38,434 bases of DNA, from contig FLMG01001764.1 in NCBI GenBank assembly GCA_900088475.1, positions 1-38,434 of the forward strand, in the 5' to 3' direction. This document shows positions 1 through 25,400 of this stretch, one piece after another; position 1 is the first letter of the stretch, and each line of letters opens with the position of its first letter. A program made the translations under genes and the position numbers. The DNA is from Hyphochytrium catenoides (Eukaryota; Protista; Hyphochytriomycota). The notes beneath the pieces are model-generated. The model saw only the letters and a program-made list of their open reading frames with translations, ran no database searches and was not told where the DNA came from.

Positions 1-3000
1 GATAGGTCTGAGGGCAGGAGAGAGAGAACAAAGAACATCATCTCCGCCACTCGAGGCAAGAGGAGTGAGCGTTCCTTGCAGTGCTGGAGGAAGGTAGACA
101 TTGGGAGAGATCTAGGTAACAGGATGTCCTTGAAGGACTGGAAGGCTGATGGATAGAGCGCAATAAGGCCAGAGGACAGCTGTAGGATGAGCTTCAACAA
201 TCGCCCGACCTCCTCTGTCTCTACCAGGCGGTTGCCCTCTATTTGCGCACAGGTCAAGCTTGTGGACTGGTTAACATCGAGGAAATGTTGAATCAGACGC
301 TCTGTCAAGTCTCTGACAACGTGTTCCCTCAAGAGGTTCTTCTCTTCTCCCTGTCCTTCACCCCAGCTATTCTCCTCCGGATCGCTCTTCTCTATGTCAG
401 CTTCCGGGACATGTCGAGCTTCCAGGAGGTTGCGGACCACTCTCAGGACACGATCAACGGACCAAGGCAGACAGCTCGCTTGGAACCAAACGTCATCTTG
501 GTCTTTACCATTCGTTTCCTCTGTGTTTGCCTTCTCTCCAGTGGTCCTGGTTAGCTGGAGACTGTCACTCAGCCAGAACCATAAGGCAGCAGAGAGGAAG
601 CTACCAAGATAGGGCCTCGCAAGAGAGTGATTGTGCTTCTCCATCGCGCTTGGGTGCCCTCCAGAGAGAGAGATATAGCAAGAAGAGTCTCTACGAGTCC
701 TGTCTCCTCTCCACAGTTTGCTCATTGTGTCGATTAGACCAAGCTCCTCTTCGCCTAACGTCTCTGCGATGGAAGAATGGAGCTCAATTCTCAGAGTAGA
801 CCAATGATAGCAAAGGAGAACCATGAGACCTCGGCTACCAGCCACACGCGTCATGAAGGCGCAGGACCTCTCTGACTTCTTGTCTTGTCTTTTCACGGCC
901 ATGAGGACAAGAGTCATTGAACGTCTAGACACGGGATAGAGCTCCCCAACAAGTGCTCTATCCTGCTTCAGCAAATGGTCAACATCCCTTGCTAGCTGTG
1001 CACAGGCTTCTCCGGCCTCCTCCGCCGTCATTGTGCTATCTGCCTGGTTCAGAATTGTGCAATAGAGCTGCAGATAAGCCATCCACATCCTTGGAGTACA
1101 TTCCCTTCCTCTCTCCTTCTCAAGACCTCTTTGCAGACCCAGCTCCATGCGTCTCCAAGCCGCAGAATAGTTCCCGAAGAGTTCTTTTAAAAGAGAGACT
1201 GCGAGCAAGAATCCTGATGGAGCGTGGTCAATAAAGCAAGCCGTTTCACCACTTTCTGCCCTCAAGTCAGCCTTTAAAAGGATATATTCCTCTGTGACAA
1301 TAATGAAGATTGTGGAGGTTAGAGCCATCTGAGTCGTGAAAGCCGGAGCTAACGATGGGTTGCTAAGCAAGAGCTGATGGTGGCTTGCCAGGATAAGGGA
1401 TGAGGTAAGAGAAGCAGCGCTATACTGAGAATCCTCTACGCAACCCAAAGCTAAGGATAGGCATGCAAACTGCAATGGTATAAAGACGAACAGTTCATCA
1501 CTACGGTCGATAAGCAACCGAAGTCATACCTAATTCTCTCACAATGCAAGAGGCGACCTCCCAAGCTACCTTCTCCATATTCCCTTGCAGACTGAGAAGG
1601 AAATTTTTGACAGATTTTCGACGATGAGGCTCTGGACTAGCATTGTCCTGAACGTGGAGCTCGAATTGCAGGAATTGCTGCACGGATAGGGGTTTCTTTT
1701 TCAGGATGTCTGGTCCAAGGTACGGCAACCGAGAGTGAGAACAGAATGGAAAAGTAGTGTACAAGGAACGTCACGCAGACTGCGGAAGCATACCGGCGAT
1801 GAGAGGCATTCTTAGAAGTTGATTTAGAAGATGCTGGTCTTCAACAGTGGCAGCTATGCATCGTATGTGGAACCAGTGCAGAAAGTAAAGCAGTTTGACT
1901 GGAATGAATCCTGGACAGAAGTGATCAGGAGTTATATCAGAGATCGTATCGAAGGAACGACAGCGGCTACTGAGGTGACATGGGCGATAAGTAAGGCCAA
2001 GAGTTTTGAGCGGATTTCAAGCATTGTGGGGAAGGTCAGGTGCGGAAGGGGATCTATAGTATAGGAAAAGCAGCGGAAAGAAGACGGAGGCTCTAACGCA
2101 CTCGAGTTACCTAAGCTATCTCGTGCTGCCACGAGCATTCTGTTTTCCTCGAAGGTCACTTCTGCAAACTGCCAAACCGTGGAGGAGATGTATTTCATAG
2201 AGAACGCGGCGGCAGACCTGATGTCTTTTAAGGTCTTACCCCTTGTACTGCAGAGAGCATCGACGACTTTTCTGCTGAACGCTCGAATGAATGATCGATC
2301 TGATGAAGTCATTTGCGGAGCCAGCTGCTCACTCGTTGGCTGGAGAAGTTTCGGAGGATGGGTTTGAGATAAGGAGAGAGAGCAAATAAGGCCAAAAATG
2401 GCAGCGGTCGTAAGACAGCCTCTAGAGGAATCTCGTTCCCCTTCACCAAGCTGCAACCCTATAAAATGTTCCATTGTCTCAAGCATGTGGCTGAGAAGAG
2501 AGGAAGCTGCCCGTCCTTTCTCGGTCTGGGATGTCTTCGCCTCACCAAATTCGTTGTGCTTCGTCCTCTTGGTGTCTACAAGCAAGTGGACGAGAAGGTA
2601 CCTCGTAGTCCGAGCCCGGGCTGCATTGTTCTGTTTAAAGGCCAGTACTAAGAGTCGGTGAAGGAGGTTGAGGACCAAATAAGCGCAATGAGGGAGCTGA
2701 GCCAAAAGCAACGCTTAGCTATCTCCCCTTGCAGGCGTCACTTGTTTTGGTTTTTAGCTTACCTCTTCCACCTTCAATTCTGCTACCAACTGCGTGAGCT
2801 TAGAGACATCAGAGATATCAGGTTGTTCACCTAAGAAAAGAATGAGTCCGGGGGAGGTGAATGGCAATTAAGCTCCAATGGAGAGGCTAGTCAATCAGCT
2901 TCCAGAATCTGAGGAATGACAACTCATAGCAGAGCAGAGACGAAGTAAGATTAAGCTTGAGAGATGGCCGTGATAGAAAAATTCCTTTTATAGAAAGATT

Positions 3001-5652
3001 TAGGAAGCAGAGCTCGTCGAGAGGTACTAGGTACCATGGAGAAGGCTGTACCTGATGGGCCAGCCGCAATTAGAGTTTGTTCTACCGAACGGAAGGTTGA
3101 CTCAAGTGAGGAAGGAGAAGTGCTTGTCTGGCTATTAGCGCTGTCCTGGGCTTTTTTGGCCCTCTGCAGCAACTCTTCATAGCGCTTGGAGACGCTCTCT
3201 AGCTCTTCCTTGGACACCAAACCTTCGGCCTGTAAGGCCCTAATAAGCTCCACTTGGTATTGGGCAGTGCAAAGTCCATCCTGGGCTTCTTCTAGTTCCT
3301 ATGAAAAGAGGGATGAACGTTTAAACTTTGACTAGTAAGAGGCAGGGCAAGAGATAACATCTGGGAAGGGGGTGCCGGAAGAGAAAGGAACAAAGAGAAA
3401 GACCGCTACTTTTGAGGCGGCATGGAACTGTTGACCACCAGATGCGAGGAGTCCAAGCCATGCCACGGATTTGAGGGAGGTGAAGAACGACCTTGAGCTC
3501 TCTGACGTTGGCTGGCAGAGTAAGCAGCGCCTTTTTTAACTTCAGCCACTTTGCCCTTTGGAAGAGAACAATTTCCTTCACTCTTCGAGGCAAAGCTTTC
3601 GTTCTTGCGAATGAAGCGACTAGTTGCTGGCATTCAGAAGCTATGGGATCAATCAGAGGCTTAAAGCCAGATATATCGGCTGTAGATAGGTCCTCCACCT
3701 ATGAGTATGAGTGAAGACATAGAGGTGAACTTGGAGCACTTGGCGCAGTAGAGCTCGATGCAGACGGTACCGACAGCCTTCAACATGTTATCACATCCTC
3801 CTTGTCCATTCCTCTTCTTAGTCACAGGGCTGCGTCCAATGCCCCTTGCTCCTTCCCTGACCCTTCCTTTGGTATCCGTGCAAATGGTGTTGCCGTCTAT
3901 TGTCACTCTCCGTAAGGCCAGGACGTAATACCTTCCACTCCTGCTCTCGTACTACCTCTACTTTCAACACATCATCAACTGTCTTGGTACGAACCTTAGT
4001 CAGGTCATGAAGCCGGGTGCGCACCAGCGATATGAAGTCCGAGACCTCAGGTGCTTGACAGAGCACCTTCACTGCTTTCTGATGGGCCCGCAGCTTCTCG
4101 ACACAGTCTGTCGGGACACTAAGAGAGAGGCACTCCATCCAGACAATAGTTCTCTTTTTCTGAATGAATGCGTTGTCGTCACTTCTCCAGTTAATGGCTG
4201 CACCTAGTCGCTGTCTCAGCTCCCGCATCGTAAGATTGAAGGACTTCATGCAGGCATCTTCCGACTCCTGGTCGTAAGCCACTTCTTCGATACTTCCACA
4301 GCTCAAGCATAGCTGCAGCCACACCAGATATAGAAAAAACATGCGCAAATTCTCTCCCTTTCGCGGCTCCATGTCCGTAGCAAAATGGTTCCAAAGGAGT
4401 GCGACAAAGACGCTAGCACGCTGTGGATTTCCTTGTTCTATACTCTTGGTGACAGACTTCGATGTCACCTTGTACAAAGCCTGAATGTATGGAAAGAGGC
4501 CCTCCTTCGAAACTGCCTTGGAATAGATACAAGCCAACGTCGAGATGGCGCCTGATAGAGTGATATCGTGGGCTTCAAGGACGTCACAAAGTAGAGCAAG
4601 GACGCACTCACACGACAGATAAAGAAGAAATAAATCTAAGAGCAGAGCAAGAGCCTGAGGACAGACATGGCCCCCACGCTCTACCGCTTCCTGAGGTGGA
4701 AAGCTCTCTTCCAGTGACCATCGCAATAAGCAAGACATTAACTGCTGAACATCGCGGATAGATACGAATGAAGCAGCAGCCTCTACAATCCGTTTGACGG
4801 AGGAATATCCCCCTCGGGCCCCTACGCTGCTGCGGAAGAGCTGCCTATACGTTTCCTCCAGAAGAGCTTGGGAAAGCCTAGATTCGCCTGGCCGTATCGC
4901 CGTCGAGGCGATGGTGTTTAACCATCGCGAGATAAGCCAATGAAGAATCTCTTGCCCTATGGCACATACAGAGCACCCTTCGATGTCCCCAGAATCACAG
5001 ATAAGCAAAGCCTTTAGCTGGTTAGTTAGAGCTGACAGTCGATCCTCATCTGCAGAGAGACCGGATGGGGAGCACCTTAGTCAACAAATGGTGGTCTAAC
5101 CTAAAAAAAACGCGCGGGGTGAAGGTTACCTGACGGCTTGGCAAAGAGGCTCTGGAATTCTGCCAGTCGAGAGCTGCTGAGTAGCCATAGACCAAGGAGT
5201 GAAACTGTTCCACTTGCTAATTTAGCGTGCAGCTTTTCCTGCAGTTGCTGCAGGACCAAAGGTGAGACACTGATAAGTGATAACGCTTCAAGAGACGAGG
5301 CCAATTCGACCACTCGTCTTTCCTGCAAGGACTATAAGGAAAATCATCAGTCCAAGGCATCATGATGGCAAGGGATGGATAGACTGTCGCTTACGTGCTG
5401 TTCTGCGGGCTGGCTGAGTAGCTTGTCAAGGATAGTTTTAGGATCAAGAGAAGGCTTGCCTTTGCTTCCACATGCAGATCTGAGCCGCCCATTGAGGGCC
5501 GAACCTTTCTTATTTACGAGGCTGCTTTGTAAGATGGAGGTACTGACATCTACCTCTAGCGGCTTGCAGTGACGCTTCGTATTGCTGTTGTTGGCCGCCA
5601 CGTCAAGCTGTAACCCTTCCAGCAAATCGAAGACGTGCGGTCGCTTGGGCAT
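1..5652 (-). CDS. Large alpha-helical protein, FANCA-like (Fanconi anaemia group A-like); 3' end lies beyond the window start
   Basis: Phase-consistent GT-AG model with exons 5652-5395, 5331-5130, 5049-3932, 3698-3492, 3298-3052, 2830-2763, 2696-2111, 1910-1794, 1709-1530 and 1435-<1. The last frame stays open to base 1, so it is missing from the ORF track. Total is ~1,470 aa or more. Motifs KKRTIVWMECLSLSVPTD..LRAH..VSDFISLVRTRLHDL, VEDLSTA, LVASFARTKALPRRVKEIVLFQ..KALLT, ELIRALQAEGLV and LSVQQFLQFELHVQ parallel human FANCA as I recall it. The gene is well supported; the FANCA call is moderate. Confidence 0.7.
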
Positions 5653-6703
5653 TACACAGTGCTCTCATGCTTTCTTCCCTGCACAGGGCACAACTCTTTT
5701 TGCTGGCTGATACCGACCAAAGCGCCCCTGAGCCAACGGAGACCCCTATGGCATTTTATCTATTCAGACATCATTCTGAGGACCACTATCAACAGGGGTG
5801 AGCGGACAACACGTCTCCAGCCATCTCTGAACTGAGCTTCAGAGCTAGCTCCATTGGCGGGAACAGCAGTTTGGAAATTTCTTAGCGCGCCACCCCCGCA
5901 CTTGGGAAGCGGTTTGCCGCCAGAAAGCCGTTAGCGGCTACCTCGCGCCACGCCCTTGAACCCAGTAATAAATCTTCAGCTTGTAGCCAACCGGCGCCTG
6001 TGCGTGGCGAGGGCCGCAGCCTCATCAAGGCTTGTCATTGCCGCCTCTCTAGCGCAGAACATGGCCATCGATCCACCTTGCGGAGGCCGTGCACCATCTA
6101 ACGCTCATGAAGGTGCAATGGGCAACAGGGCAGATGGGCTCCAAGATGGGCCTAGCGGTATGTTCTCTTGAGGCGAAACGATCAGACGGTGCCATCACCT
6201 TCGCAAACGTGCGGCGAATCATTACGAGCGGTCTCTGCGTCATCACCGCTTCGAGGGTAAACGTGGCGATGTGGCAACCGCCTGCCCAAAGGAGTGCACT
6301 CAGAAGTAACGACCCTAGTTCGGTGAGCCAGACACACCGAGGAACAAAGTTGAGATAGCCTCGCGTTGCCTTACCAGCGTTTAGCCTCGGTTATTGCGGA
6401 CCAAAACGGTTCCCGTCCTTTCGGATCTACATTGTCCTGTCTCTCCTGTGCGAGTAGAGGCTCTCTCGTCCTGCAGCGCTGTATTGTTCCTTTCTCATCT
6501 GACATATATTGTATATTCTTGTACCAGCACTTAGACCACAGGACCACTATCCTCTTCATCCTAAGGCTGTAAGATTATCGCTGCCTCTCCCACCTTCTAG
6601 TTCCCTCCTCGCGCTATTCCCCGGCGGCTCTGCCTTCATTTTCTCCCTCACAAACATCAGCAGTCTTGTCTCTCTATATTAAGGGTTGCACGTCCTCACG
6701 TTC

Positions 6704-8937
6704 CTACGTTAGACGGGTGAAGAGCATTCTCTCAGTAATCTTGCTGGGTTCATCCGGAAGATCAGCAAAGTCTGCAAAGCGCAGTAGCTCGTCTTTATCC
6801 TCTTCGCCTTCGGAGTCGTCCCGTGGAGTCTCAGGATACAATCCCTCAGTTTGGAGGTCGGCCGACAAGCCTGGACGAGTCGATCCATCGCCCTCTAACT
6901 CCGTTGACTTTCTTTACTAAACGTTCCAAGAAGTCTCCCCTTCCCATCTCCCGTTCGTACTTCACGCTGCATTCTAGCCGGGGAACATTGTACCTGATGG
7001 CAGCGATCTGATCTATCTCTTCTGGTCCCAGATGATTGACACGCTGAAAGTAAGCCTGCTGCTCCTCAGCAGTTCTACATGTCTTCCTGCTTTCCTCTCT
7101 TGCTACACTCGCGGGGTTGAGATGTATCTGGATTAGAAGAGGAGCTAGGGCTCGGTACTCGTGCTGGACTGTAGACCAAGCTAAGGCTGGCTGTAACCGC
7201 ATGTTGGCTAGTAGCGGATGGGTAAGATGGTGCGCCTTGATGCAGAAGCTGGCGAATTCTCCAATCAACTTTGTATAGTTCTCGTCAAAGCTGTCACTGA
7301 GAAGCTTCAGCGCTTTGTGGCACTGCTCCATCAGAGGGCCCTGGCCCAGTTCTAAGAAAGAATGGCCAAATCTTGTCTCTACAGCCTTTCTCATCTCGAA
7401 GAAGAAGGGGTCAGTGTAGAAGGCAAGAGCATGCAGAGGTGAATAGATGCCAGCCAGCCTCTTGTCGAGCAGCGCGTAGATGTCCTCAACAGCTTCGGGC
7501 TCCTCTAGTGACAGATTCTTTCTAACCTGCTTGTCCAACGTTGCTAGGTGGATCTTGCAGTACAGAAAGCAAGCATACACGGAAGATAGAGTCGTTCCTT
7601 CCTGCTCGAGATAGTGCGTGCAACTAGAGATAGGCCCCAAAAGCGCTTCCATTGCTGAGCATCGCTGCCAGAATCTCTCGTCTTCAAGTAGCTGCTTCAC
7701 AGTTTCTACGAGCTCTACGTCTGTCTTCAGCAAGGATCCATCACAAGCTGACCTGCTGGAAAGCCGTGTGGCCGCCGGCCGAACCCTGTTGAGCCTCTCA
7801 AACATCCGGACTGAGGTAGCCCAACGGGTCCTGGTAAAAAGAGCCAGGTTAATAGGCTTCCCTAGCTCCTCCTGGCAAATTCGTCGCAAGAGATCCTGGA
7901 GAGGAGAGGTCTCTTCAATGTGCCTTGTCACAGAAATCGCCTCTTTGAGGCTCCGGAATGGCTCTGGAAGCTTCAAGATGTCCACTACGACGTCGTTGAG
8001 GTTCTGAGACGCACAGCCATAGACTATGACAAAGGGCTTATCCTCTGGTGGGGACTGACGCATTTGGCGGACAACGGCGGGAGAGTCAGAAACGAAGCTC
8101 CATAGGATTCTGGGCCTATGCGCCTTCACTTCTCCAATGGCTTCCAATAGCTGGGTCTTAACCTCTACTAGTTGAGGGAGCAGACTATCTGCCAACCCAT
8201 TGTTTTGCCTGACTCTCAGGTGTTTAAGGAAATAATGCTCGGGACCACACGCCTCCAGCTTGAACACCTGTTGGCCGCGACGACTGCTGAGCGCCGTCCC
8301 AGCAGACAGACAGATTGTGCTCCACGACTTGATCTTTACCATTGTGTCGTCCATCACGGTCCGATACTCAGCTTGCAGGAGCTCCCCTCGAATCCGGGCG
8401 GCTCCGGGCAAAGTGTAGCCAGGCATTAGCGAGCCAAAGAAGTCTAACCAGAGTGGGTCCTCGAACGCATTGAAGGGAATGCCCGTACAGCATATGGCTC
8501 TCGCCAGCCTCCGGTCTAACGACAGCTCTCTCTGAGAAGAGATGGTCTTCGTTGCCGCAAATGCTGCTGTGGCGCCACTATTATGAGAGCGTCCTTCCCT
8601 TCTTTCATTAGACTTTTGCCTCTTTGCTGCTTTTTGCCTGTGGCATCGTTCAGGTTCACTTCTGCCAGGACCAGGTCCGTTGGACCGTCTAGCCTTTCGG
8701 ATCAGCTAAGAGGCTGGCATTTGACGAAGATGACGAGCTCTGCGTGTGGAAGAGCAGCGTTTGCCTTTCATCGCCCTGGTCTCTCTTTGGACACTTAAGG
8801 AGGTGCTGGCGGAGGCGGCCAATCAAAGCGACAACGTCTTTCCCACAGTGTTTGCAATCAACTCGCCAGCCTTTGGTCCCGCATTTATGATACTTCGCAC
8901 CGAACTCCGCCCAAGCGACATGTGCCGTTGGCGGCAT
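6704..8937 (-). mobile_element. hAT-superfamily (BED zinc finger + DUF659/RNase H-like) transposase-derived gene, probably inactive or domesticated
   Basis: BED finger AWAEF..VDCKHC..RLRQHLLKC lies in 8937-8689. The core frame is open 8705-6846 and contains LARAICCTGIPFNAFEDPLWLDFFGSLMPGYTLP, FVSDSPA, GCASQNLN, TRWAT, HALAFYTDP and NPASVAREES. An acidic tail sits in the +1 frame at 6913-6704. No convincing TIR/TSD pair was found. Confidence 0.85.
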
Positions 8938-10055: not shown

Positions 10056-13000
10056 TCAGAGAGACGGCAGCTGCAGTTGCGTCCGTGGAGAAGAGCTTTC
10101 TCCCTTCTTCGTTGCCCGTCCGCCACTGCCTCGAGGCATTATCTTCGGAAGAAGTTTGCTGTTGGATAGAGCGAGAGGGGTAGATAGCCGGTAGCTCACT
10201 GGTTGAGCAGACGGAGCTATGACGATGGACCGCTGTCTGTGCTGTATGTCCTCTCCTAGCACGAGCTCTTGACTGGTGCTGCCAACAGAGACGCAAGAGT
10301 CGTCATCTGAAAGGACGTAGGGTCCTTTCTCCTCCCTGCTCCCTTGTCCCTTTTGCTCTTCCTTCTCCCTTTTCTGCTCGCTCTGTGGCTCATAGTCTTC
10401 CTTTCCATTCTTTATTCGCTCCGCCTCCTCAAGAAGAAGAGAATGGCGGCTTTTCTGCTTAGCCCTGATCAAGGCTTCAGGTACCCAGGAGGCCGTGATG
10501 CGATACGAAGCTTCAATGTCTCTGTCATTAAAGAGAGAGAAGAAGTACATCTCACTGCTTGAGTCTCCCTTCCGCTCCGCCGGAGTGATCACAAGCTTCT
10601 CAGTGCTGTATGACATATACAAGCGCCGCAGAGAGAAAGATGGTCAAAATATGTGCACTCAGAGGACCTCCAACACAAGGAAGAGTGACAGATAAGGGAG
10701 AACAAGCTCCAACCAAGAGGAAAGAGTGACGCAGGGGTGAAGATCTTCATATGCTAATAACAAGCAGGCGCAGCAAGGGACAGACGAACTTCCACCATAA
10801 AGGGCAAGGTTAAAGCAAAGAAGACAGCGTGCAAACACAGGGAACTGAGAGGGTAGACTCCACCGCGTGAGGAACTGAAGCGAGTGACAGGCCAACAATG
10901 AGAAGCTATGCTAGACCTGATAGACTTCCACTCATGGTCCAGGCGCGATGGGATAACTCTTCGGCTAGCGTAGAACTCATAGTCCCGATGGCTGAACTGT
11001 AGCTGCACCGTGATGAAAGTCCTCGGCTCATGAACCTCAAGAGAAAAGGAGGCGGATCCTTTCCCTGGAATAGAGCCTTCAAGAGGTTGCCGGTCATTAA
11101 GCTCTAGGAGAGTCTCTCCGGTCCACGTCTCAAACTTTCTTTTGAGACGATCTCGTCTCCATGAGTTTTTGTCACCGCTATGAGAGCTACTATCGACCTC
11201 GTTACGAGGAGAAGCATCGGAGCAAACGAACCTTTGAGGGCTGGACTTTGAAGGGGAAGCAAGAGAGCTCACACTGTCTCTCATTCTCTCTTCTAACCGC
11301 CTCACCACCTCTCCTACTGCCTCCACCTTTGTTTTAGGGACACTGCTCAGCTCTTCCTGTCTTTCCGGTCTCCCACTCTCCACGCCTTCACGGCTTGGCT
11401 CCTCTAGGACCTTGCGAAACACTTCTCTTTTCGTCTTCTCAAAGAATGTCTGCCAGGGGAGAGAGGACTCAACGAAAAGAGGATTTGCTCTTTTGATGAG
11501 TTCATCCGTGCCTCCCATGGTATAGAGGTGCTCTAGCCTGTTATAGTCAATCGAGTTCTCTGGCACTGTCTGGAACCTCTTCTGGGGCCTGATGGAATGA
11601 GAAGAGCAAGTAGTATGAGACAGAGTAACGAAGGGGGAAAAGGGCTACCAGGAGATAGATAACCTGAGGGACAGTAGTTGCAACTTTGGGGCGAGGAAGA
11701 GACAGAGAGGAAGACCGAAGCACGAGAGACGAAAGATGTTGACAGCCTGATCCTGGAAGTAAAGGGTATAAAAGAGCTTGTGGGGAGTGCCAAGGAGCTG
11801 GATGGGGCTGGGGAAGTCACCTTTTTGGAGCGCCATTCTTCTTCTTTGTTCTCCATACTTCTTTCTCTTCTTCACTATCCCAAGGCGCATTGTCATCATC
11901 TTCCTCTTCACCAGCTACTCCAGGCTTCCATCCTGGAGCGCCTCCTCTGAGCTTTGTGATAAAAAGATCTGGAGAAAGTTCAATGTCGTCCGTAAAGTTG
12001 AAGCCAGAGAGGAATGGCTTCCTCTCCATGGGAAGAGGAGCTCCTCTGGTAACCGGAGGCGGCTTCTTCACTGAAGCGGGAGACGCAGCTTCTCCCTCTG
12101 CATCTTCAGGCGGTATTTCTCCATCCTCTTCTTGCCTTCTCTCTTCTACCACTGAGACATGGAGATCAGGAGAGTCCACATCCGGTACGGATGAGGGAAC
12201 AGGATATTGAAGCGACTCTTCGCTGTGCTCTGATGATGGAGACGGGGTTACCTCCTGGTACGGTATCGCTCCATCCTCTTTGACTGGCTCCTCATGAATA
12301 GAGACTGCCAGCTCTTCGTGCACCTGGTTGACCAGGAAAGGGAGTCAAGGGTAAGGAAAGTATTGGCAACAAATACGTAAAGGTAACGAAAGGGAAGACA
12401 GGAGCATTCTTTCAGGCCGTAACCACAGGTTAGGAAGAGGGAGATGGGCGGCCATGAGACAAAGTAGCGGAAGTACGGGAATAACAATCCAATAGAGGTG
12501 TGACATCTGCCGCTCGTACCATTTGTGAATCCTCAGCTTGAACTGGCTCCGTGCTGAGAGTGGAGACGCTCTGATCGGTAGGAGCGATGGTCTCATTTCC
12601 AGCAGGAGCTGGTGCTTCATCCTGAAGAAGCGGAGCAATGCTCTGGTCCATAGAGGGAGAGGGAAGATTTTCGTCGTTCTCATATCTCTCCTCTGACGTT
12701 AAAGCAACTTCCTGCGCCAAAATCGAACCTCTGTCTAGACTTTCGTCTTCGTCTTGGCTTAGAGATGAGTCATCTTCCTCATGTGACCCTTGCTCTTCCT
12801 CTTCCTCATCTTCCACATCTTCCTCGGTGAGTGAGTCCGCTTGATGTTCTTCTGTAAGATCATCTTCCTCCTCGACGCCCAGCTCCACCGATTCCTCTTG
12901 TTCGTTCTCACCTAGCGCAACGAAGTCATCTCCTACAGTTATCTCTTCTTTCTCTTGTAGGTCCAGAGATTCTCTGCCTTCTTGGGCCGACTTCCTCTCA

Positions 13001-16000
13001 CGCACCTTGTTTCCTTTGACTGAGGACGCTATACTTCTCAGCTCCTGTCCATAAATAGATAGTTTCTGCTGTCTTTTATCTCTGTCTCCTTTTAGACTCC
13101 TAGATCTAACGGGGACCACATTGTTTGGCTTCGGAATATGTCTCTTCGGTCTCTTTCTTCGGTCCCCAGCTCTTTGGGGGCTCGTTGTATCTAACTTTGG
13201 CTTCACACTCCTGCGCTTGAAGAATGAGTACGCTCGGCGTATCTCCGCCAAATGTTTCTCTTCTTCCTCTAAACTCAGACCTCTCTGTCCTGCTGTCACA
13301 CCCATTAGCTGCAGGTCTTGCTCTCCAGCGCGCTCTGCTCCCTGCTGCTGGTCTCCTGTGTCCAATGTATTTGGGTTTCGGCTGGACACTGATCCAACTA
13401 ATCGAGAGGGATCAAGGACATCCGTTCGAGAGAGGAAAGAGGATTCTTTGTCCTGGTCCAACGTAGAGAGGCTCCCGTCCTTTGCCCCCTTTCCTTTCGC
13501 TTTCTCTAAATCTTCCGGCTGACCCTTCACCGAAAGCACATCGGGGAGCTGTGGGATGACCAGATGAAGTGGAGCTGGGGACTTAGCCTCATCCTCTCTT
13601 CTCCCCTTCTCTCTCAAAAGGTCCAAAGAGAAGGCCGAAGCTGAAGAAGAAGGAAGAGGAGTTCCGGGAGGAGAGGAAAGGGCCAGGGCACTTCTCTGCT
13701 GCTCCAGCGCTACCTTAGCCTCTGCGGGTGTAAGGAGCTGGGCTTTGGAGACAACCAAGTATCCGGAGGAATGGATGTTCTGAGCCCCTTCTCGTCTATC
13801 CTCTGAGCCATCTTGTTTCCTCTCTTCAATTCTGTCTCCATCTCGTGCCTCATTGTCTTCTTTAGGGACAGTGCCCGTCAAGTCCAAAGTCCCTGCCATA
13901 TCAATGTGCTGGATAGAAGGAAGGCGGTGTTCTCTCTTTCCCTCCGGAAGAGGAGCTAAATAGGTCTGTACATAGTCGCCAATGTATCTCTGCTGTTGCT
14001 TTGTCACGACATAGTCATAGTCTCGGGCACAAAGTGCAATTCTCTCAAAGGGAAGAACCTCCCTCTCCCGTACTAGGTGGACGTAGAGTACTGCCCATAA
14101 GTCTAGGTAGCAGATGGCAGAGCTTTCTAGCTGATCAGAAAACCATTCGCAGAGGAGACAAAGCTCTTCTTGTCTTGCTTTCAGGGAGATGCCCCAAAGC
14201 CTCTGCGCCTGTGCATAGAGGACTCCGCAGAAGAGAGAAAGCTTGACACATCCTGTTCTGTCCTCATCAACTTCAAGAAAGGCATGAAGCAGACTCCTGA
14301 TCTTCTCTAGGATTTGGCTATGGTCTTTACGTACTTTTTCCTCGTTCCCCTTCTGCTCGTCTTCAGTCTCTTGGCCTCTCTCAAAAGGAGCGTCAAAGAG
14401 CTGATATGCTGCTTCTTGTGCCATCACTCTAAATCTGAGCCACTCGGCAAGGTAGGAGAGAGAGTAGGCATCCAAGTCAACTGCAAAGCGCACAGAGTTT
14501 GTCTCCGCGAGAGCGGATGCCTTCTCCTTTAAACTGGAGACAAAAAACGGCGTGCCCACTTTCCACTCCAGAAGCTTCTTCAAGAGGACATCGACATTTC
14601 TCAGACTAGCGTGCTGAAAAAAGAGGTAATCAGAGAAGGCGATCGGTGAGCATGGAGACAGAGAAACCAAGATCCATTAAAAGAACGCCCTAGTGAAGGG
14701 CTAGACTGCATAAAAGAGAGCAGAGTAGGTGAATTAGACGTCAGATTTGTCTCTCGCTGCACACGAAAGCAATCAGAGGCCCCAGAGCTGTGAAGCAGAT
14801 AATGAACTCAGAGAGTTGGACGGAGAGAATAGAGGCTGGACCGACGCACAATGGAGAAACCTGAGTGAGAGCGTTTATCCTATGTTTTCCTACTTACCGA
14901 GGTCTTCGTAGTGGCTGGCGCAGATGACCAGTGTTCATACACAGGTCCTTCTATGAGCAGATCCAAAGATCGGAAATAGTAGCCAAAGTCCAAGTAAGCG
15001 CGCAATGCGTCATCATCCACCTTGTGATAGTCCAGCAGAGAGATGAAGCACCCAAAGGTAGCGCAGAGTGGGACATCGTCATACATCAGGATAGAATCAA
15101 AGAGCTGGGTGAGCCTTCTCTGCGCCACCATTCGGTCCCCATACTGGTGAATGAAGTCTTCACAGACCATTTGGACCAACTTCTCCGGAAGAGACGGAGT
15201 CGATGTGGTGAACGGGGAGGGACAAGCAGATGATTTCTGCAGCGTACCATTGCTTTCCTTGTTCGTTTCGCTAGAAAGGGTCAGAGAAGCAGAGGCTGAG
15301 GAAGGTGAACCGCCAGAGGTGCCATTCGCCCTAAGCCTTTGCGTTTTCGTATCCCAGAGCGTAAGATCAGCAAGCATGCGCTGGATGAAGGAGACGACAG
15401 TCTCTATCCCTAATAGAGGAGAGTCTTTTAACCTGACTTTTTCCCGATACCGTCCGCAGTCGTCGCAGTAGTAGCTACTGGCAAGAAACCTGGAGACAGG
15501 AGGTAATAGCAGAAGCATGGTGAGGCCCAAAATATGACCCCTTGTGTACAAGCCATGACGAAGGAGGAGCAAAGCCAGAGACGACGGTTAAAGCCAACAG
15601 TCTCTTTACGGAAGGACGGAAAGACAGGTACAAGGGGAAGAAGAGCACAACGAGAACGAGTGGGAGAGACAGTAAGTACAAGATACACCAATAGACAGAC
15701 AGCAGAGCGACCCGATGGCCAACAAGACAGAGCGCGGGACTGGACGTACACAAATCCACAAGTGCAGTTTGGCTCTAGCATGTAGTACTCCCTTGCCGCC
15801 TTCGCGTACTTCTCTCCTCCCCAGAAGTCGTAGAAAGGCGCTGGGATCTGCGCTACCGGTCTCTCCATAGACATATACTTAGGACGTGAGACCGAGTGCC
15901 GGATAGGGCTCTTCCTCCCAGTCTGACTAGTAAGCATTGGCTTTCTCTTTTCGCCCTGAGTGGCTCGGAAGATAGATGTGACGACATCTTTCCCCGTCAC

Positions 16001-19000
16001 AACCCGAAAAGACGTCTCTAGAACCTCCACCTGCTGGGACGAGCGGACGGGCTCTCCCATGGAGTTGTATGAAACAGTCACGCGAGTGGTGCGCATGGCC
16101 TTTAAACAGAACCGGTCAATGGTCAGGAAGCGGCAAGCTATAGGACCTTTTAACATTTGGAAGGACTTGGAATGCAGACGTGCAATATGCAAGGAAACAA
16201 TAGAATGCCAGCAGGAAAGAGTGGACTGGATCCTATACTAAGATGGAGACAGACGAAATTAATTCTATCGACGGGCGGAGCGGAGTTGGCTTTCGATGGG
16301 GGATATTGTGCTTAGAGGAGAAATGGTGATGGAGAGACACCCTATCGGTATATGCTTGCTCAGAGCGGCAGAGAAAAGAGTGTGTTCTTACTTCATAGGG
16401 GAGATGCTTCCGTCCTTCTCTCTCCTCTGCCTTCGGCGTAGGAGTGAGCTGAGCACCTTGATTGCTCACATCCGCATTAGTCTCATGTCCAGAAACCTGG
16501 GGAGCCTCTGACGGTATCCAGATGATGAGTCCGCAGTTGTCTAATAGGGCCCAGCCGCACTGTATCTCTCTCTTTCACTTTCTGCTGAAGTCCATCGATT
16601 CCCGTCAATATATTTTCTCTCTTTGATGCGATGTGGCATGCATTTAGACCGTCGCACTAACTCCCCTTCCTCGTCTCTTTTTCTCTCTCTCCCTCTCCCC
16701 CTTCTCTTTCACTCTGTCTCTCTCTCTTCTTTTTTTCCTCTCTCCGACCCGGATCTTGTTTAGATTGGGGTCGCGATCGCTAATGCTGATCTCCATCCTC
16801 TGTCTCCCTTACCTTGTTTCAACTCTTGAATGAGCTCGTCNNNNNNNNNNNNNNNNNNNNNNNNNNNNNNNNNNNNNNNNNNNNNNNNNNNNNNNNNNNN
16901 NNTCTACCTCTCCAGACGAGGCATCAGCATAACGGGCGAAGAGATCCTCAAGGTCCGTCTTAACCTGCAAGGAAGAATAGAAAAGGATAAGAATACCAGC
17001 GCTAGACGAAGGTGCTGGCATGCTTCGCATGGCTTTAGAAAAGAGAAGCCAAAAATTAAGTCTGAGGCTAGTGAGGAAGCTATGGGACTTCCATAAAGGA
17101 GTCAAAGGAAACACAGAGGTCTCTCATCTCTCTGACTCACCTCTTTGATTCTTTCACCCGTTACTATCAGACTGTGCGGGAGCGAAGGACCAACCAACGA
17201 CCCTTCCGGAGGAGGAGACAAAGCATCGCTCCTGTCGTTTATAGTCGTCCTTACTACTTCCTTTGAATGTCCAGCAGAGACTATAGGACACGAACGACTC
17301 TGAGCGACCAGTCAGACGAAGTGTGCAATGGGGGTTATAATACCTGTGCTGATAGAGGAATGAGGGAGAGAAACAGAGTGACAAGAGCCCCAAAGCTGTG
17401 CCGGTGACTGCTCGAGAGGAATAGCAACAGGCTCCTGCACGATATTCAGTTTTGCCGCAAGGTCCTTGCTGTTCCCTTCGGTCAATTTTCCTCTTATCTC
17501 GTTCCTGCTGATCAGTATGAGGTTTTCAGAGCCCAAGCAGACAATCTTTTCCACGCTCTGGGCAAAAAAGTAGTACTTCAGCGGGATCAGATCGATCCTC
17601 ACGTCCTCTCGAGAGGAAGAGTAAGAGACAGTGCGGGTCACTCCCCATAGAATGACCTGATGGTCCAAAGAAGAAGAAAGAAAGTAGCTGCGTTGATGGA
17701 GTGGATTGGCCTTCAGTTCCGAAGCCTCGTCAGGAGAGTAGCCGGGGTTATGGGGAGTAAAGGGCACAATTGAGGTGACGTGGTCCGAGTGCTCTTGAAC
17801 GTAGAGCTTCTTATCTGTTTTTCTCTCTTGATCTTCACTGCCAGAATCAATGGCCCAGACAGCAATCAAACCTCCTGTCAGGCCGCAGACGACCGCCGGC
17901 GGAGAAGGTAATGCGATAAAGCAGGAAAGAGAGGAGGCACTTCTAATCAGACTGCGTGAATCAATGCCAGAAGTGGAAGGAGACGGGTGACCCTTTCCAG
18001 TGTCCATGAATGTTTTCTTCAACACGTTGTACGTAGCAGCGCAAAGAACATGAATGAAGCCGTCGCTTCCAGCCGTCACAAGCACTCTCCTCTCTCCAGT
18101 TCGAACCTCTTCTTCAGTTATCTGTGAAGCGCAAAAGCCATAGGGCGAAGATGACGGGGAAGAGCCTGGGCATCTTAGATTACATAGCTGCATCCCGATT
18201 ATGGAAGCGCCATGCAGCCTCCAACACTTAGAGAGGTGCGGAGGGGCAGAAGCGGGCAAGCTCCAGACGTAGACGATGCCTTCGCTTGTCCCTGCCACGA
18301 TGTGATAGTTTGAAAGTGAAGAAGGATATAGAGTTGGCTCCCGCTCTTTACGATAACTTCCTTCCTTAGTCCTCCGTGGCAGTTTGCCACCCCAAGGAGC
18401 AGCGACTTCCTCCTTAGGAGCTACGTTACTTACTAAGTGCTCACTTGCTTGCTGCAGCGAAGTGAGTGCGGACGGAGGGATGAGACAAAGAGAGGATATC
18501 GATGCTGTGGCTTCGGGATGTTGAAGTCTGCAGCTGGGATGTTCCCCATTTGCATCTATTACGTCGATTTGCCCGTTCTCCCAACCTACTATGAAGCATG
18601 AACAAGAAGGGTCGTAGTGAAGAGAGGTTGTCCTCAACTGAGAGGACGCTGGCCTCTCCCCTCCCGTAGCTAGAGAGGAAGAAGGAGATGAGCCAAAAGG
18701 GTAGACAGAGAACATTCTGAAGCCTGCTGGCCCTCCCGTCGTAGAAACAAGGGCGCCAGAGGAGGTGATGGCTGTTCCAGCCTTATAAATAGTTGGAAAC
18801 CTCTCCTTCAGTTTATGAAAGGATTCTTCGAGGGTCTTAATGTCTGCCACCGTACTCGAAGAGAGAGAGACAATAGCTTCCTTCGGATTGTTTGGGGTGA
18901 AGTCCTCCTGCCCAGCTCCGCTGCTTTCTGCTTGGCCGGTGGACTGTCCTTTGGGGCGATCCACGGCATAGAAATGCATCTGGTTATCGTCAGTGAGCAT

Positions 19001-21114
19001 TACCATTCTTCCAATATATTTCTTTTGCCCCTCTTGCTTCCCGGGTTCGTCTCTCTCTTGAAACTCATAAAGAGACTGAATTGAAGCAGGCGAAGAGTCA
19101 AACGTGTGACACCTCGTTCTGATCCTAAACGTAGATATAGAATCAACCGCTACAACGATAAGGGCGGGGGCATTGCAATCTTTTGATGCCAGCTTGGCAT
19201 CTACGAGAAAACGTGCCCAAATTGGCCCAGAAAAAGAGAGGACAGGTGATGACGAAGCAGAAAGTCCTCCGGGGCAGGCCAAGTTGATTTCTCCCAAAAG
19301 TTCCCAGCTTTCATAGTTCCACTGACGGACATAGCCATCCTCTCCTGCCGTGAATAGGCTGCTGGAGGAGAGCTTGGCATTGCCGACATACCTGGGAAGA
19401 AGGGGACAGCAGAGACAGCCGCGCGAGGAGAAGTAAATAAGAGTTAATTAGGGGCATCTGGGAGAGAAGAAGTGCTTGCATCCCAGGATGGGAATAGAGA
19501 GTATCTGAACAAAGTTTAGAGAGGGAAAAAGGGGTCATAGTCCCCTTTCGAAAGATGTGTTAAGAGAAGAGTAGCTCTACGAGGAGTCACTCAAAATAGA
19601 AAAATGACGAGGAGCAATAAGTCCGTAGCCAGGTGCAGGTCCTACAATGCAGAGATCCTGCCTTCATGAAGCTGCTTCTTCTGATGCGACACACGGCCCA
19701 GTGCAGCCTCTTCTGCTGTCATCTTGGGAGCCCGCTCATCCCAGATGCGCACAATACCGCGCTCATGGCCGGTGATTACCTTACTAATTCCAGGAAGAAA
19801 ACATAGAGTCGTCACTTTTCCTCCTAGAAAGTTCTCAAAGCAATGAGAGAGAGAAAGGGTGGCCAGGGACCAGATCCAAATGTTAGCTCCATCTTCTGTA
19901 CAGCCAATTACCACGTTCCGCCTGCTATTGAGGTGAAGGAGCCCGACAGGGCGGTCGTGACCCATCAAAGTCCCTACCAAGGTAAGAGAGAGCGGAAGCG
20001 CCTTTCCTCCCAATCCTTCCGCCCCTACCTCTCCCCCTTGCCCTGCATCAGCGTCTGCCGCAGAGCTGGTGTCGCTAGGTATCGAGAACTTCCAGACTTT
20101 AATGACGGAGTCAAGCATGTCAGGGCGCCCTAGTCCAATCCTGTCCGCCGGAAAAGGCTCAGTCTTATCTATCTCTCCCCCTTTATCACTGCCACATGTT
20201 ATGAGACAAGAGTGCGAATCATCATAGGCTGCGCACTGAGTGTAGGACTTATGCAGGCGAATAATAGCAGCAGGCTGAAGAGAAGGGAGAAGCAGCCTTG
20301 CTGTCCCAGCATCCTGAGGTCGAGCCCCTTCCAGTGCTTGGGTCACTACTTCAACAGTGCCGCTAACTTCTTCGAGTGCCTCTCTTTCTTCAGTCCAAGT
20401 GTCTCCTCGTTCTTTCCCCCCAAAAGTAATGAGATAGCGGTCCAAGGCAGACACGTAGGAAGCTTGAATAACTCTGGTCCGCGCGACTCCTCGCTCGCTG
20501 AGAGGAACTCTTGCAATCTCTTTCTGAGACGAACTTAGAAGTAGGGCAGCAAGAAATAGTTCAGAGAGATATAGAGACTAAAGCCAGAAACCATCATCAA
20601 AGGGAACGGATCGGGTATAGACTAGAGGCCAAGGGAAAATTAGCTGAGTCGTGAGAAGGAGCAAAAGAATGGAAGAGACTTCAGATAAGCAGCGGAAGGT
20701 TGTGGGCTGTGGTCAGACTTAAACTTTCATCTTCGACTTTCGACTATAAAAAATGTGGCGCTGGTTCGGACTGTGCCGGCTGATACTGTAAGGAGAGTTA
20801 ATGAAGAGAAAGAGTGTGCTTACAAGAGCTTGAAACAGGCTTGGTCTGCCAGCAAGGTGGCATGTCGCCGCCAGTCGTAAGCGAAAGCATCCGTTCGGAA
20901 AGGTGCGACTCCCAAAGGGATTCGATATGCAAGCTCCAGGGAGCAAAACTGATGACTCCCTTGGCCTTCTTCCTCTGTGGACAGTTTTAATGTCTCCTCC
21001 ACTCTCGCCCGCTATAATGCAGACCTAAGACCTTTGACTATTGAACCTGTAGCGTAGAGAAGTGGCACTTACCCCTTGGCTACCAGCCTCAACGTCCGAG
21101 GTATCCTCTTCCAT
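10056..21114 (-). CDS. Very large WD40-repeat protein with EF-hand-like motifs and an acidic low-complexity C-terminal half (~2,800 aa)
   Basis: The model joins MEEDTSDVEAGSQG (ATG 21114) | RARVEE..ACFKL | FSSQKK..HEGRISAL | YVGN..FTAGEDGYVRQWN.. and the ORFs 19297-17312, 17114-16809, 16192-15428, 15572-14880, 14670-12430, 12323-11817, 11566-10754 and 10622-10056. Most joins use phase-compatible GT-AG sites. WD40 signatures: GHDRPV..IWIWS, ITGHERGIVRIWD, AGTSEGIVYVWS, TAGSDGFIHV, EHSDHVTSI..SSSLDHQVILW. EF-hand-like motif: AFLEVDEDRTGCVKLSLF. The junction near 14897-14613 and the exact ends are unresolved. Confidence 0.7.
16841..16902. other. Assembly gap (N-run) inside a coding exon
   Basis: The run of N interrupts an EF-hand-like exon (DLFARYADASSGEV..DELIQELKQ). 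The stated gap length does not preserve the reading frame, so it is only an estimate. Confidence 0.98.
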
Positions 21115-21889: not shown

Positions 21890-21968
21890 GGGTGAGAGAA
21901 AGAGAAAGAGAGTGAAAAAGAGAGACGGAGTACGCGAGCGAGCGTGAGAGAGAGAAAGAGAGAGAGAA

Positions 21969-22006
<38 letters not shown>

Positions 22007-22075
22007 GGAGAGAGAGAGAGAAAGAGAGAAAGGGTAAAGGAGGGAAGGAGAGGAAAGGCAAGAGGAAGAAACACA
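21890..22075 (+). repeat. (GA)n / GAAA polypurine microsatellite
   Basis: Nearly pure purine tract with (GA)n runs, e.g. 21945-22030, between the divergent WD40 and HECT genes. Confidence 0.9.
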
Positions 22076-22477: not shown

Positions 22478-25400
22478 ATGGACCTAGAGATGTCTGAGTC
22501 TAGGGCAGAGGGAGCCAATGACGGCGTGAATGGGGATCAAGCTTCTAATGAGATGGCCAACACATTTTACAGGTAGGCAAGGGAGAGAAGGAAAACAAGG
22601 AGAGAGAGAGAGAGAGAGAGTAGAAAATTGAGAGGATACAGAGAGAAGAAAAGAGAGAGAGAGATTATGAGGCAGAGACACAGAGAAAGGTACTTCGAGG
22701 GACAGAGATTGAGGAAGAGGGAGAGGCGCGACAAAGAGAAAGATTGGACCAGCTGGGAGGGATAGGGATCAAGCTCCAGTCCTTGCTGACGTTTCCTCCC
22801 TCTTGTCGGCCGACTCTAGGCTAAATAGCCAGCTTACTGGGCAGTTCCATTTATCGCCCGTAGAGGCAGCCGTCAAGGCTCTGGAGCTTCTCCAGGCGGG
22901 GCCACCATACATTGTGGATGGTGTTGACATCACGAGCACTGTCGTCGGTGTAGGAACGAGCGGCGGCATCCCGCCCGCTATGGACAGTGCGAAACCTGAG
23001 AGTGAAGACCCTGAACATCCAGAAACAGAGTTAAGAACCCAGGAAGATGACGTGACAATGGAAGATGCCCCAGCGCACCCCCAGCCTCAAGAAACGGTCA
23101 CGCCTTCGTCATCAGTCGCATCTCCCGCAAATCCACCGTCTGCGTCAACACAAGGGACAGCTAGGGAGCACGGGCAAGGTTTAGATCTTTCCTCGATAAA
23201 AGAAATGGTGGAGGTTGCTGGCTCATTGGATGACTTCAAAGCGCTCAGAGAAAGAGTGTATGCCGTCTTCTCTTCCACTGAAGCCCTATCTGTGTCCTTT
23301 CTCTCCTCTCCCACCCTGTCTCCTCCGAATTCTGTAGATCTGGATGCGGCGCATGAAGCGTTCAGTCTGCTAATCTCTCTCGGAAACGAGTCGATATTGA
23401 ACTCTTTGAAGTATGCTTTGGAGTCACTGATGGCAAGTCTTCAGTACAGGAAGTTCGAGGAAGATGACGAGAACGGCGTGAATCAACTTCTCATAGTCAT
23501 GGAGTATCCTCTATTGCTGGACCCGTCCTATCATCGACACGTTCTAGGAGTCTTGGTGGCCATTCTATTTCATCTTCCTTCTAAGCTCAAGGAGCAAGTC
23601 AAAATGCTGTGGTCTCACTCGAAAGAACGCTTTGAGCGTATCCTCTCTACACTTCAGCAGTTTATCACAGTCCGTATTTATACCTTGCAAGGCTCAGGCT
23701 TGGACTTTGCCCAGCCAGACGTGATGTGCGCGGCCTCCATGATAGGGATTCTACATGAGATCAATGCGGAGAAACACTATATCTCTTCTGCAGACTTCTA
23801 TAACGATGCAGTCAATAGCGAGATGAACGTAGTCCAGGACTATAAGAAGTGGAGGACAAGAGAGCTTGAGAATCTCACAAGCTCAAACACTCCTTCCCAT
23901 CTCTCTGCTCTTACTTCAGACCAATTGGCTTTCTCTGACTTTCCGTTTATGTTGGACGCTGCAGTGAAGGCGAAGATCCTCCAGCTGGATGCACGGATTC
24001 AGATGAGGGCTGAGCTGCAGGTACGGTCCCCGTCTTTGCAGTTCTGTTACGAGAGAGACAATTGAGCTTCTGCTGTTTCTTGCTACCTTTTCTACGGTGC
24101 CGATTATTCTCCTCCTCAAAATTTTACCTCACTATCTTCCAAACATCTGTGTACGCGGATCGTGGAGCCTGACTGTGTGTGTAGCACCCCTTTGTGCTCC
24201 ATAATGGCGGGTCTCTAATCTTTTACTCTTGCGCTCTCTGACCCCTAGGATGCCATGCTCCGCACCCTCCTTTTGGGTAGAAGTAGCCCTTATCTCTTCC
24301 TTAGAGTGAGAAGAGACAACATTATTCAGGACACTCTGCAGCAAATTGCTTCCATATCTGCAGAGAACAAGAACGATTTGAAGAAACCCTTAAAAGTTCA
24401 GTTCGTGGACGAGGAGGGAGTAGACGAAGGAGGAGTGCAGAAGGAGTTTTTTCAAATACTCATTAGGCAGCTGCTAGACCTAGATTATGGTAAGGAAGCT
24501 ATGCCGGTGGGAGGACACACAGGGTCAATGGGGAGGTGTACAGAGTTAGGTCGCACTTGGTGAAGGAATGAGTTCTAGAAAAGAGGCAGGTGTAGCTGGT
24601 GGAAAGGTACGAAGATTACCGGGGATCCTTTGGCGCATGGCAAGACGAAAGGGTTAGAAGCTATAAGGGCAGTCCTTGCATGCTGTGGAGCGAATGGCGA
24701 TCCTTAGGAAGGAGTTTGAAGCTGAAGTAAGGGCTTAACAGGAGGATCAGCACCTGATATTAGACATGTCTGGAAAGATGCTCAACTTTCTTTGTCTCAA
24801 CAGCCATGTTTATGTACGACGAAGAGACGCGGACCCTTTGGTTTAACAGCCATTCTCTAGAGTCGTCTATGGAGTTTGAGCTGATAGGCATTCTGATGGG
24901 AATCGCAATCTACAATGGAGTCATCCTGGATGTAAACTTCCCGCCTACTCTGTACAAGTTGCTATTGGGTGGGAAACCCAGTGTGGAAGACTTGATGGAC
25001 TGTAAGCCGGTAAGAGAGCCAGGAGTTATATCATTTCGGTTTGAGATGCATGAGCTACGTCCGACGAACGTTAACCTAACAAAGGAACTATGTGTCTGAT
25101 CAACTTGCTCGCTCTCTTTTTCCCATATCGCTCTCTCCTTCTCTGCGCATTCCTGCCACGTAACTTTTAATCAGTCACTGGGTAGGGGGCTGAAGTCCCT
25201 CTTAGAGTATGACGGAGACGTGGCTGAGACGTTTGGCCTGACTTTCCAGATCCAGCAGGAGGTGTTTGGAGAGAAGTTTGACGTAGACCTTAAGGAAAAT
25301 GGAGCAGACATACCTGTCACCAAAGAGAATAGGCAAGGTGAGACTGAGATCGTGACGGAGGATGGCTCAAGGAGAAGGGAAGGTTAAGAGTGTGCAGATG

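Follow-up and report, generated by a model that had tools for sequence, protein, structure and literature searches.

A candidate, strongly diverged FANCA orthologue in the hyphochytrid Hyphochytrium catenoides

The known range of FANCA covers animals, choanoflagellates and some early-diverging fungi (PMC6792448, PMC11061109). As Fanconi_A_N has been reported from choanoflagellates (PMC6792448) and FANCA from Mucoromycotina fungi (PMC11061109), the notion of a largely animal-restricted protein, on which the preliminary description of the present locus relied, is dated. Further, the FANCC-FANCE-FANCF subcomplex is reported to be conserved in plants (bioRxiv 10.1101/2022.07.05.498687; PMC10085685), implying that core subunits are able to persist outside animals. 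For stramenopiles, a literature search found no report of FANCA.

The locus discussed here occupies one end of a window of 38,434 nucleotides, the whole stretch of Hyphochytrium catenoides DNA that was analysed (contig FLMG01001764.1, positions 1 to 38,434 of the forward strand; assembly GCA_900088475.1). Its product is apparently a large, all-helical nuclear scaffold of at least 1,458 amino acids. Judged by the order and spacing of its motifs, we lean towards regarding it as a very diverged FANCA orthologue. With the chances about evenly balanced, it may be the first FANCA beyond animals, their closest relatives and fungi.

The protein resembles vertebrate FANCA (human 7KZP chain A, Xenopus 6LHS chain B) in length (at least 1,458 residues against 1,477 in human and 1,437 in frog), in predicted helical content and in three motif blocks of the same order and nearly equal position. 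In contrast to the vertebrate proteins, PF15865, PF24781, PF24783 and PF03511 are undetectable in it, pairwise comparison on a database scale reaches no significance, and neither the N-terminal domain proper nor the available part of the C-terminal region gives a signal, the true C-terminus lying off the contig. With Mucoromycotina and choanoflagellates it shares a non-animal setting and a reduced FA pathway in which a FANCA-like protein is kept beside FANCD2, FANCL and FANCM. Those lineages, however, are opisthokonts whose proteins were found through Pfam domain matches, whereas the hyphochytrid protein fails the Pfam models. The plant FANCC-FANCE-FANCF case differs in that it concerns other subunits and is backed by genetics, while the hyphochytrid candidate is known from sequence alone.

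A ten-exon gene at the contig start

The gene is real, and runs on the minus strand from position 5652 to base 1 as ten exons joined at GT-AG introns, stop-free over 1,458 codons (Table 1). The exon count is that of the preliminary description, which had put the length at more than 1,470 amino acids. As the contig start cuts the gene, the model lacks the C-terminal end of the protein. The minus strand has long open stretches at 5664-5350, 5331-5104, 5080-3821 (420 codons), 3698-3324, 3298-2954, 2867-2757, 2714-1935 (260 codons), 1770-1504 and 1523-3 (507 codons). The last of these is open through the contig end and is lacking in the list of open reading frames because it runs off the source DNA; that the list had missed the final exon was therefore correctly noted.

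The ATG of exon 1 is the first after an in-frame stop and opens a basic N-terminus (MPKRP...). Use of another in-frame donor, near 3932, would lengthen exon 3 by 21 codons, and exon 4 can be joined in frame to exon 5 through the phase-0 donor at 3491 only. Several solutions exist for the junctions of exons 7 to 9, so that the model is not unique there; choosing among them by maximising coding length was rejected, as the resulting models were implausible. The intron after block A may lie close to an exon boundary of human FANCA, but a single near-coincidence in a set of nine introns would not be significant, and it was given zero weight.

Table 1. Exons of the gene model and motif blocks, in positions of the window
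Feature	Position	Strand	Description
Exon 1	5395..5652	-	86 codons; ATG at 5652-5650; donor GTAAGC
Exon 2	5130..5331	-	phase 1 end; alternative in-frame acceptor at 5322
Exon 3	3995..5049	-	352 codons; inside the 420-codon open stretch
Exon 4	3492..3698	-	69 codons
Exon 5	3052..3298	-	one helix, then a Ser/Thr/Glu-rich low-complexity stretch
Exon 6	2763..2830	-	23 codons
Exon 7	2111..2696	-	3' end uncertain; frame open as far as 1935
Exon 8	1794..1910	-	model; not unique
Exon 9	1543..1709	-	splice model
Exon 10	1..1469	-	489 codons, open up to the contig end
Motif block A	3995..4161	-	KK..(8)..LS..VP..(6)..L..H, then [YF]ISL..TRL.DL; human FANCA 466-521
Motif block B	3543..3635	-	F..T..LP..V.E..LF.R; human FANCA 550-580
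Motif block C	1639..1692	-	L[ST].Q..L..EL..Q; human FANCA 926-943

Motif blocks in register with vertebrate FANCA

The motifs lie where they had first been placed, in exons 3, 4 and 9, and follow the order of human FANCA. Exon 3 contains KKRTIVW..LRAH and SDFISLVRTRLHDL, exon 4 contains EDLSTA and F.RT..LP..V.E..LF.R with ALLT, and exon 9 contains SVQQFLQFELHVQ. Of the seven human FANCA strings originally quoted, the four that could be checked are exact (7kzp_A 466-492, 506-521, 550-580 and 926-943). The positions of the motifs in the model and in human FANCA are 451 and 467, 490 and 507, 528 and 551, and 922 and 928, which places them 6 to 23 residues apart. A profile seeded from the first motif reached the second unaided, with an indel of two residues, in the human as well as the frog protein; block C was not recovered in the frog chain by seeded profile search. 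In vertebrate FANCA, the matched blocks belong to the best conserved 15-column windows, with ranks 1, 3 and 5-6.

The matches were evaluated with profiles made only of genuine FANCA proteins of vertebrates, 12 to 107 in number (P0001-P0124, each with Pfam FANCA domains). With these FANCA-only profiles the top matches of exons 3, 4 and 9 are blocks A, B and C, at per-exon P values of 0.006-0.05, and they share one diagonal (offsets 58-75). Profiles restricted to fish, sauropsids or mammals leave the motif positions unchanged. Block A is the top hhalign match (P 0.021); by hmmsearch its score was reached in 7 of 1000 shuffles with the 12-sequence profile and 34 of 1000 with the 107-sequence profile, and its in-band score is 26.3 against 13.6 for the reversed exon. 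Block B is likewise the top hhalign match (P 0.034 and 0.049) and was equalled in 6 of 1000 shuffles by hmmsearch with the 12-sequence profile; the hmmsearch score of exon 4 with the 107-sequence profile is not significant. Against real open reading frames of the same genome, 2 of 606 windows scored as high as block B, and a second null of this kind gave none of 34. Block C is the top hhalign match (P 0.021), was reached in 37 of 1000 hmmsearch shuffles (107-sequence profile), and has an in-band score of 20.0 (11.6 reversed), with 20.0 attained by 2 of 600 shuffles and none of 101 shifts; by hhalign exon 9 scores 22.0, compared with a maximum of 14.5 among 10 shuffles only.

Of the nine other exons, five have their best domain within the diagonal band that exon 3 defines (P 0.001-0.008). 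The in-register band score is 156.1, compared with 124 +/- 3.5 for 101 shifted profiles, none of which reaches it, and with 125 +/- 6.5 for 1,500 shuffles, one of which does. Reversed exons still score 142.8, so that regional composition accounts for part of the excess; similarly, exon 5 scores 19.1 in band against 17.1 reversed, and its signal is mostly compositional. The colinear chain score exceeds exon-order permutations at a P of only 0.036. Order-specific signal was absent outside the three blocks (55, 30 and 18 residues), including the first 300 residues of exon 3 and the whole of exon 10. Those two regions are where the best-known FANCA domains are expected. Collectively, the blocks are colinear and in register to an extent that appears modestly beyond chance and partly compositional.

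The same numbers leave room for a different account, in which the locus encodes a lineage-specific, fast-evolving helical protein with no kinship to FANCA, and the motifs are chance resemblances between long leucine-rich helical proteins, aided by length and regional composition. We consider this account a serious one, though somewhat short of an even chance. It would explain why single motifs reach only the P values given above, and that against one family, as well as the high score of the reversed exons and the weak dependence on exon order. It accommodates less easily that the best matches of three exons fall on a single diagonal within so few residues of their human positions and on the most conserved blocks of FANCA, and that shifted registrations come nowhere near the observed score.

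Family and database searches

The preliminary description had proposed comparison with the Pfam FANCA profiles, and this went against it: PF15865, PF24781, PF24783 and PF03511 gave no match at E 10 on any exon or sub-piece. For Fanconi_A_N (PF15865; cut-off 27 bits) nothing appeared on exon 3 or its pieces at that threshold and the whole genome offered no candidate, while FANCA_helical (PF24781; cut-off 28 bits) did not match exon 4. FANCA_arcN (PF24783) matched none of the exons and, in the genome search, had no candidate at the locus. FANCA_CTD (PF03511) matched neither exon 10 nor the genome, and the true C-terminus is perhaps outside the assembly. Ten short pieces and the exon reading frames returned no FANCA family, and no Pfam family at all at E 0.01. 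The only PF24781 match in the genome, of 23.6 bits on contig C229, was considered as a better FANCA locus and rejected, since its frame contains two stops and is intergenic, flanked by an ankyrin gene on one side and an IBR gene on the other. This spurious match demonstrates that motif-level chance matches to FANCA_helical do occur, and it counts on the side of a chance resemblance.

Searches beyond Pfam gave a similar picture. With phmmer, six exon pieces retrieved no FANCA chain at E 10 among all PDB chains, and exon 3 had zero relatives in an exhaustive comparison with 1.84 billion representative proteins. A word search with exon 10 gave no relative, nor did two metagenome scans, so the motif blocks are known from one sequence. 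AlphaFold2 single-sequence models of exons 3 and 10 had pLDDT values of 38.6 and 38.4, too low to look for the FANCA fold, which consists of an N-terminal helical domain, an arc and a C-terminal dimerisation domain. The neighbours of the protein in ESM Atlas feature space are assorted helical scaffolds (NELF, Integrator, Mediator, Tra1, DOP1, LINES) with scores of 0.86-0.93 and low recognition values; a FANCC fragment, the top neighbour of exon 3 at 0.88, was treated as noise. Every unbiased database-scale test is thus negative and the language-model neighbours are generic helical-repeat proteins, both of which favour a protein unrelated to FANCA.

The Atlas neighbours could also be taken to mean that the locus belongs to another established family of large helical scaffold proteins, such as HEAT/ARM-type factors of transport, transcription or trafficking, whose members the tools fail to recognise. 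This is very improbable, as the neighbours have no family in common, the exons are free of Pfam families at E 0.01 and the exhaustive search with exon 3 came back empty. For the FANCA likeness itself, as originally proposed, three exons on co-registered blocks provide modest support; Pfam families and solved chains provide none.

Other Fanconi genes and the proposed role

A profile search of the genome found FANCD2, with seven exon matches of up to 54.6 bits, and FANCL, at 91 bits; their presence counts in favour of a FANCA orthologue. FANCC and FAAP100 had no match in a six-frame, exon-wise search, by which absence is not proven, and FANCE (16.6 bits, 11 bits on the reading frame) and FANCF (15.7 bits, interrupted by a stop) fell below cut-off. 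For FANCG, the table in PMC11061109 lists no Pfam accession. The fuller FA core complex that had been anticipated for this lineage is unsupported, and the core subunits that were not found are a further point for a protein unrelated to FANCA.

If the protein is a FANCA orthologue, it would presumably fold as a helical solenoid and serve, by analogy with animal FANCA, as a non-catalytic subunit of the FA core complex. Such a complex would help to position and stabilise the FANCL ubiquitin ligase, and FANCL so placed would monoubiquitinate FANCD2-FANCI at DNA interstrand crosslinks or stalled forks. It is a balanced question whether this is a genuine stramenopile FANCA, too fast-evolving for domain models, in which case FANCA, perhaps with the FANCA-FANCG-FAAP20 module, would be older than opisthokonts and reach back to early eukaryotes.

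Should the match be due to chance, the locus is merely another orphan helical protein. A true stramenopile FANCA, on the other hand, would shift the origin of the scaffold module to a much earlier time, and would mean that core-complex subunits have been missed through divergence and not through loss. It would also offer a simple microbial system for FANCA function in which most core subunits are missing or unrecognisable.

A ten-exon gene open to the contig end

The window is an entire contig of a 61 Mb assembly comprising 4,759 contigs. The minus strand of positions 1-5664 carries a series of long open stretches, three of which (420, 260 and 507 codons) are far above chance expectation at 50% G+C. 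As the preliminary description had noted, the last exon escaped the ORF track: the final open stretch is absent from the ORF list because it is open to base 1. Reading of the DNA together with a scripted frame check gave a ten-exon model of 1,458 stop-free codons, with GT-AG junctions and introns between 63 and 296 bases long. Exons 7 to 9 have the least certain junctions. All similarity searches were conducted exon by exon, and joined exons were used just for frame, length and motif positions.

Features of the contig (positions in the window)
Feature	Position	Strand	Remark
Exon 1, FANCA-like gene	5652-5395	-	GT-AG model
Exon 2	5331-5130	-	GT-AG model; alternative in-frame acceptor
Exon 3	5049-3995	-	GT-AG model; alternative in-frame donor
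Exon 4	3698-3492	-	GT-AG model
Exon 5	3298-3052	-	GT-AG model
Exon 6	2830-2763	-	GT-AG model
Exon 7	2696-2111	-	GT-AG model
Exon 8	1910-1794	-	GT-AG model
Exon 9	1709-1543	-	GT-AG model
Exon 10	1469-1	-	GT-AG model; open to base 1
Repeated stretch	240-320	+	inside exon 10
Two long open frames	17312-20454	-	661 and 270 aa
(GA)n microsatellite	21894-22029		~67 copies
Open frame	6846-8426		526 aa; no Pfam family
Open frame	12430-14670		746 aa; no Pfam family
Open frame	22803-24065		420 aa; no Pfam family

About 70 bases of the repeated stretch are 86% identical to G000:C2920:63284-63353, on another contig of the genome. Read antisense to the gene, the two copies give similar short peptides (LRTGQACGLVNIEEMLNQTLCQ and LRTSQAPGLANIEERLNEKICQ), and the likeness may come from a short repeated element or from antisense conservation. 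Elsewhere, the microsatellite lies in a kilobase with a strong purine bias (GC skew 0.27, AT skew 0.30 at 22-23 kb). The paired frames at 17-20 kb, with weak WD40/beta-propeller Pfam matches, are probably exons of a single propeller protein. With the three frames that match no Pfam family, the contig seems rich in orphan genes.

Resemblance to FANCA

The likeness to FANCA had been proposed from quoted human motifs, and the four of seven quotes that were compared proved accurate: SKKALVF..QVH is located at residues 466-492 of the solved human chain (7kzp_A), where the frog chain (6LHS chain B) closely resembles it. A two-row profile of 57 window residues and this human quote extended unaided into a second motif across a 2-residue indel (human 506-521, also matched in the frog chain; SDFISLVRTRLHDL in the window). 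Beyond these exon 3 motifs (block A, 3995-4161), the exon 4 block (B, 3543-3635) aligns with human 550-580 and the exon 9 block (C, 1639-1692) with human 926-943, where the frog chain was not recovered. Motif positions in the gene model and human FANCA are 451/467, 490/507, 528/551 and 922/928.

A word search seeded with the short quotes and two 56-residue stretches from the second-motif alignment yielded 12 partial FANCA proteins, the source of a narrow profile. Searching again with an alignment of these 12 brought up 180 proteins, of which the best 120 were all vertebrate and all carried Pfam FANCA domains. The window sequence was excluded from the FANCA-only profiles (12 and 107 sequences). 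With hhalign, the 12-sequence profile matched block A alone in exon 3 (P 0.021) and block B alone in exon 4 (P 0.034).

Exon tests: hmmsearch was filter-free and compared with 1,000 shuffles of each exon; hhalign used the broad (107-sequence) profile
Exon	12-sequence profile	107-sequence full-length profile	hhalign top-hit P	Offset
3	7/1000	34/1000	0.021	69
4	6/1000	340/1000	0.049	75
9	not significant	37/1000	0.021	58

The remaining exons were not significant with either hmmsearch profile, and residues 1-300 of exon 3, as well as exon 10, gave no FANCA signal. A null of real open frames, windows from 232 kb of the same genome, was consistent with the shuffles (2/606 at 69 residues, 0/34 at 351), and reversed exons reached P < 0.05 in hhalign with the broad profile in 1/9 cases. 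Further, the three blocks rank with the best-conserved 15-column windows in the vertebrate FANCA profile and were recovered again, weakly in each case, with fish-only, sauropsid-only and mammal-only profiles.

Exon 3 defines a diagonal band that holds the top HMMER domains of exons 1, 4, 5, 9 and 10 (P 0.001-0.008 by band width, with band centre and width picked after this anchor was known). Summed over exons, the banded local score in register was 156.1, against 124 +/- 3.5 (maximum 134.8) for 101 circular profile shifts and about 125 +/- 6.5 for 1,500 residue shuffles, one of which reached the real value; the excess persists when exon 3 is removed (129.8 vs 109.4 +/- 3.8). Reversed exons in the same band scored 142.8, so much of the excess is regional composition, clearly for exon 5. 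The order-specific part comes from exon 3 (26.3 vs 13.6 reversed) and exon 9 (20.0 vs 11.6 reversed). An unbanded colinear chain score exceeds shuffles (z 4.1), and exon-order permutations at just P 0.036.

Family searches and the Fanconi pathway

FANCA families were absent from a Pfam scan of every exon and ten shorter pieces up to E 10, a genome search with four FANCA Pfam models gave no candidate at the locus, and FANCA was never among the phmmer matches of six exon pieces to all PDB chains. Zero relatives were found for exon 3 among 1.84 billion representative proteins or for the last exon in a word search, and neither had a relative in metagenome contigs. AlphaFold2 models of exons 3 and 10 (pLDDT 38.6 and 38.4) were unusable, having no alignment to build on, and language-model neighbours of the exons were mixed helical scaffolds. 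The top-scoring genome match of Pfam FANCA_helical (23.6 bits; G000:C229:81958-82131, or L030:1501-1674 in sub-stretch coordinates) was rejected as spurious: it is an intergenic frame with two stops, flanked by genes for an ankyrin-repeat and an IBR-domain protein. Chance motif-level matches to the FANCA family thus occur.

The genome contains FANCD2 (seven colinear exon matches on contig C51, top 54.6 bits) and FANCL (contig C1171, 91 bits). The proposal of a fuller FA core complex was not supported, since the genome search gave no match for FANCC or FAAP100 and those for FANCE and FANCF fell below cut-off. The FA_FANCE match (G000:C3695:7425-7652, sub-stretch L008; 16.6 bits genome-wide and 11 bits for the 115-aa ORF) could be a diverged FANCE; that of FANCF (15.7 bits) has an internal stop. 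The pathway of Dictyostelium has been described as minimal. The origin of Fanconi_A_N was placed in the animal-choanoflagellate ancestor (PMC6792448), FANCA was reported in Mucoromycotina (PMC11061109), and core subunits were absent from dinoflagellate transcriptomes (PMC6680887). Our literature search found no report of FANCA in oomycetes or other stramenopiles.

Weighing the FANCA reading

The gene and its motifs stand as originally observed. Their reading as FANCA is plausible but unproven, with chances about even. The probability of the whole pattern arising by chance, for one protein against the FANCA family alone, is estimated at roughly 1e-3 to 1e-5. Combined with an assumed candidate pool of long helical proteins that lack annotation, possibly a few hundred across the genome, and an uncertain prior of 0.1 to 0.3 for the genome retaining FANCA, this gives a posterior of about 0.25 to 0.9. 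Judged from sequence, we lean slightly towards a diverged FANCA. If true, the gene would be a new, very distant member of the known FANCA family and not a new kind of system.
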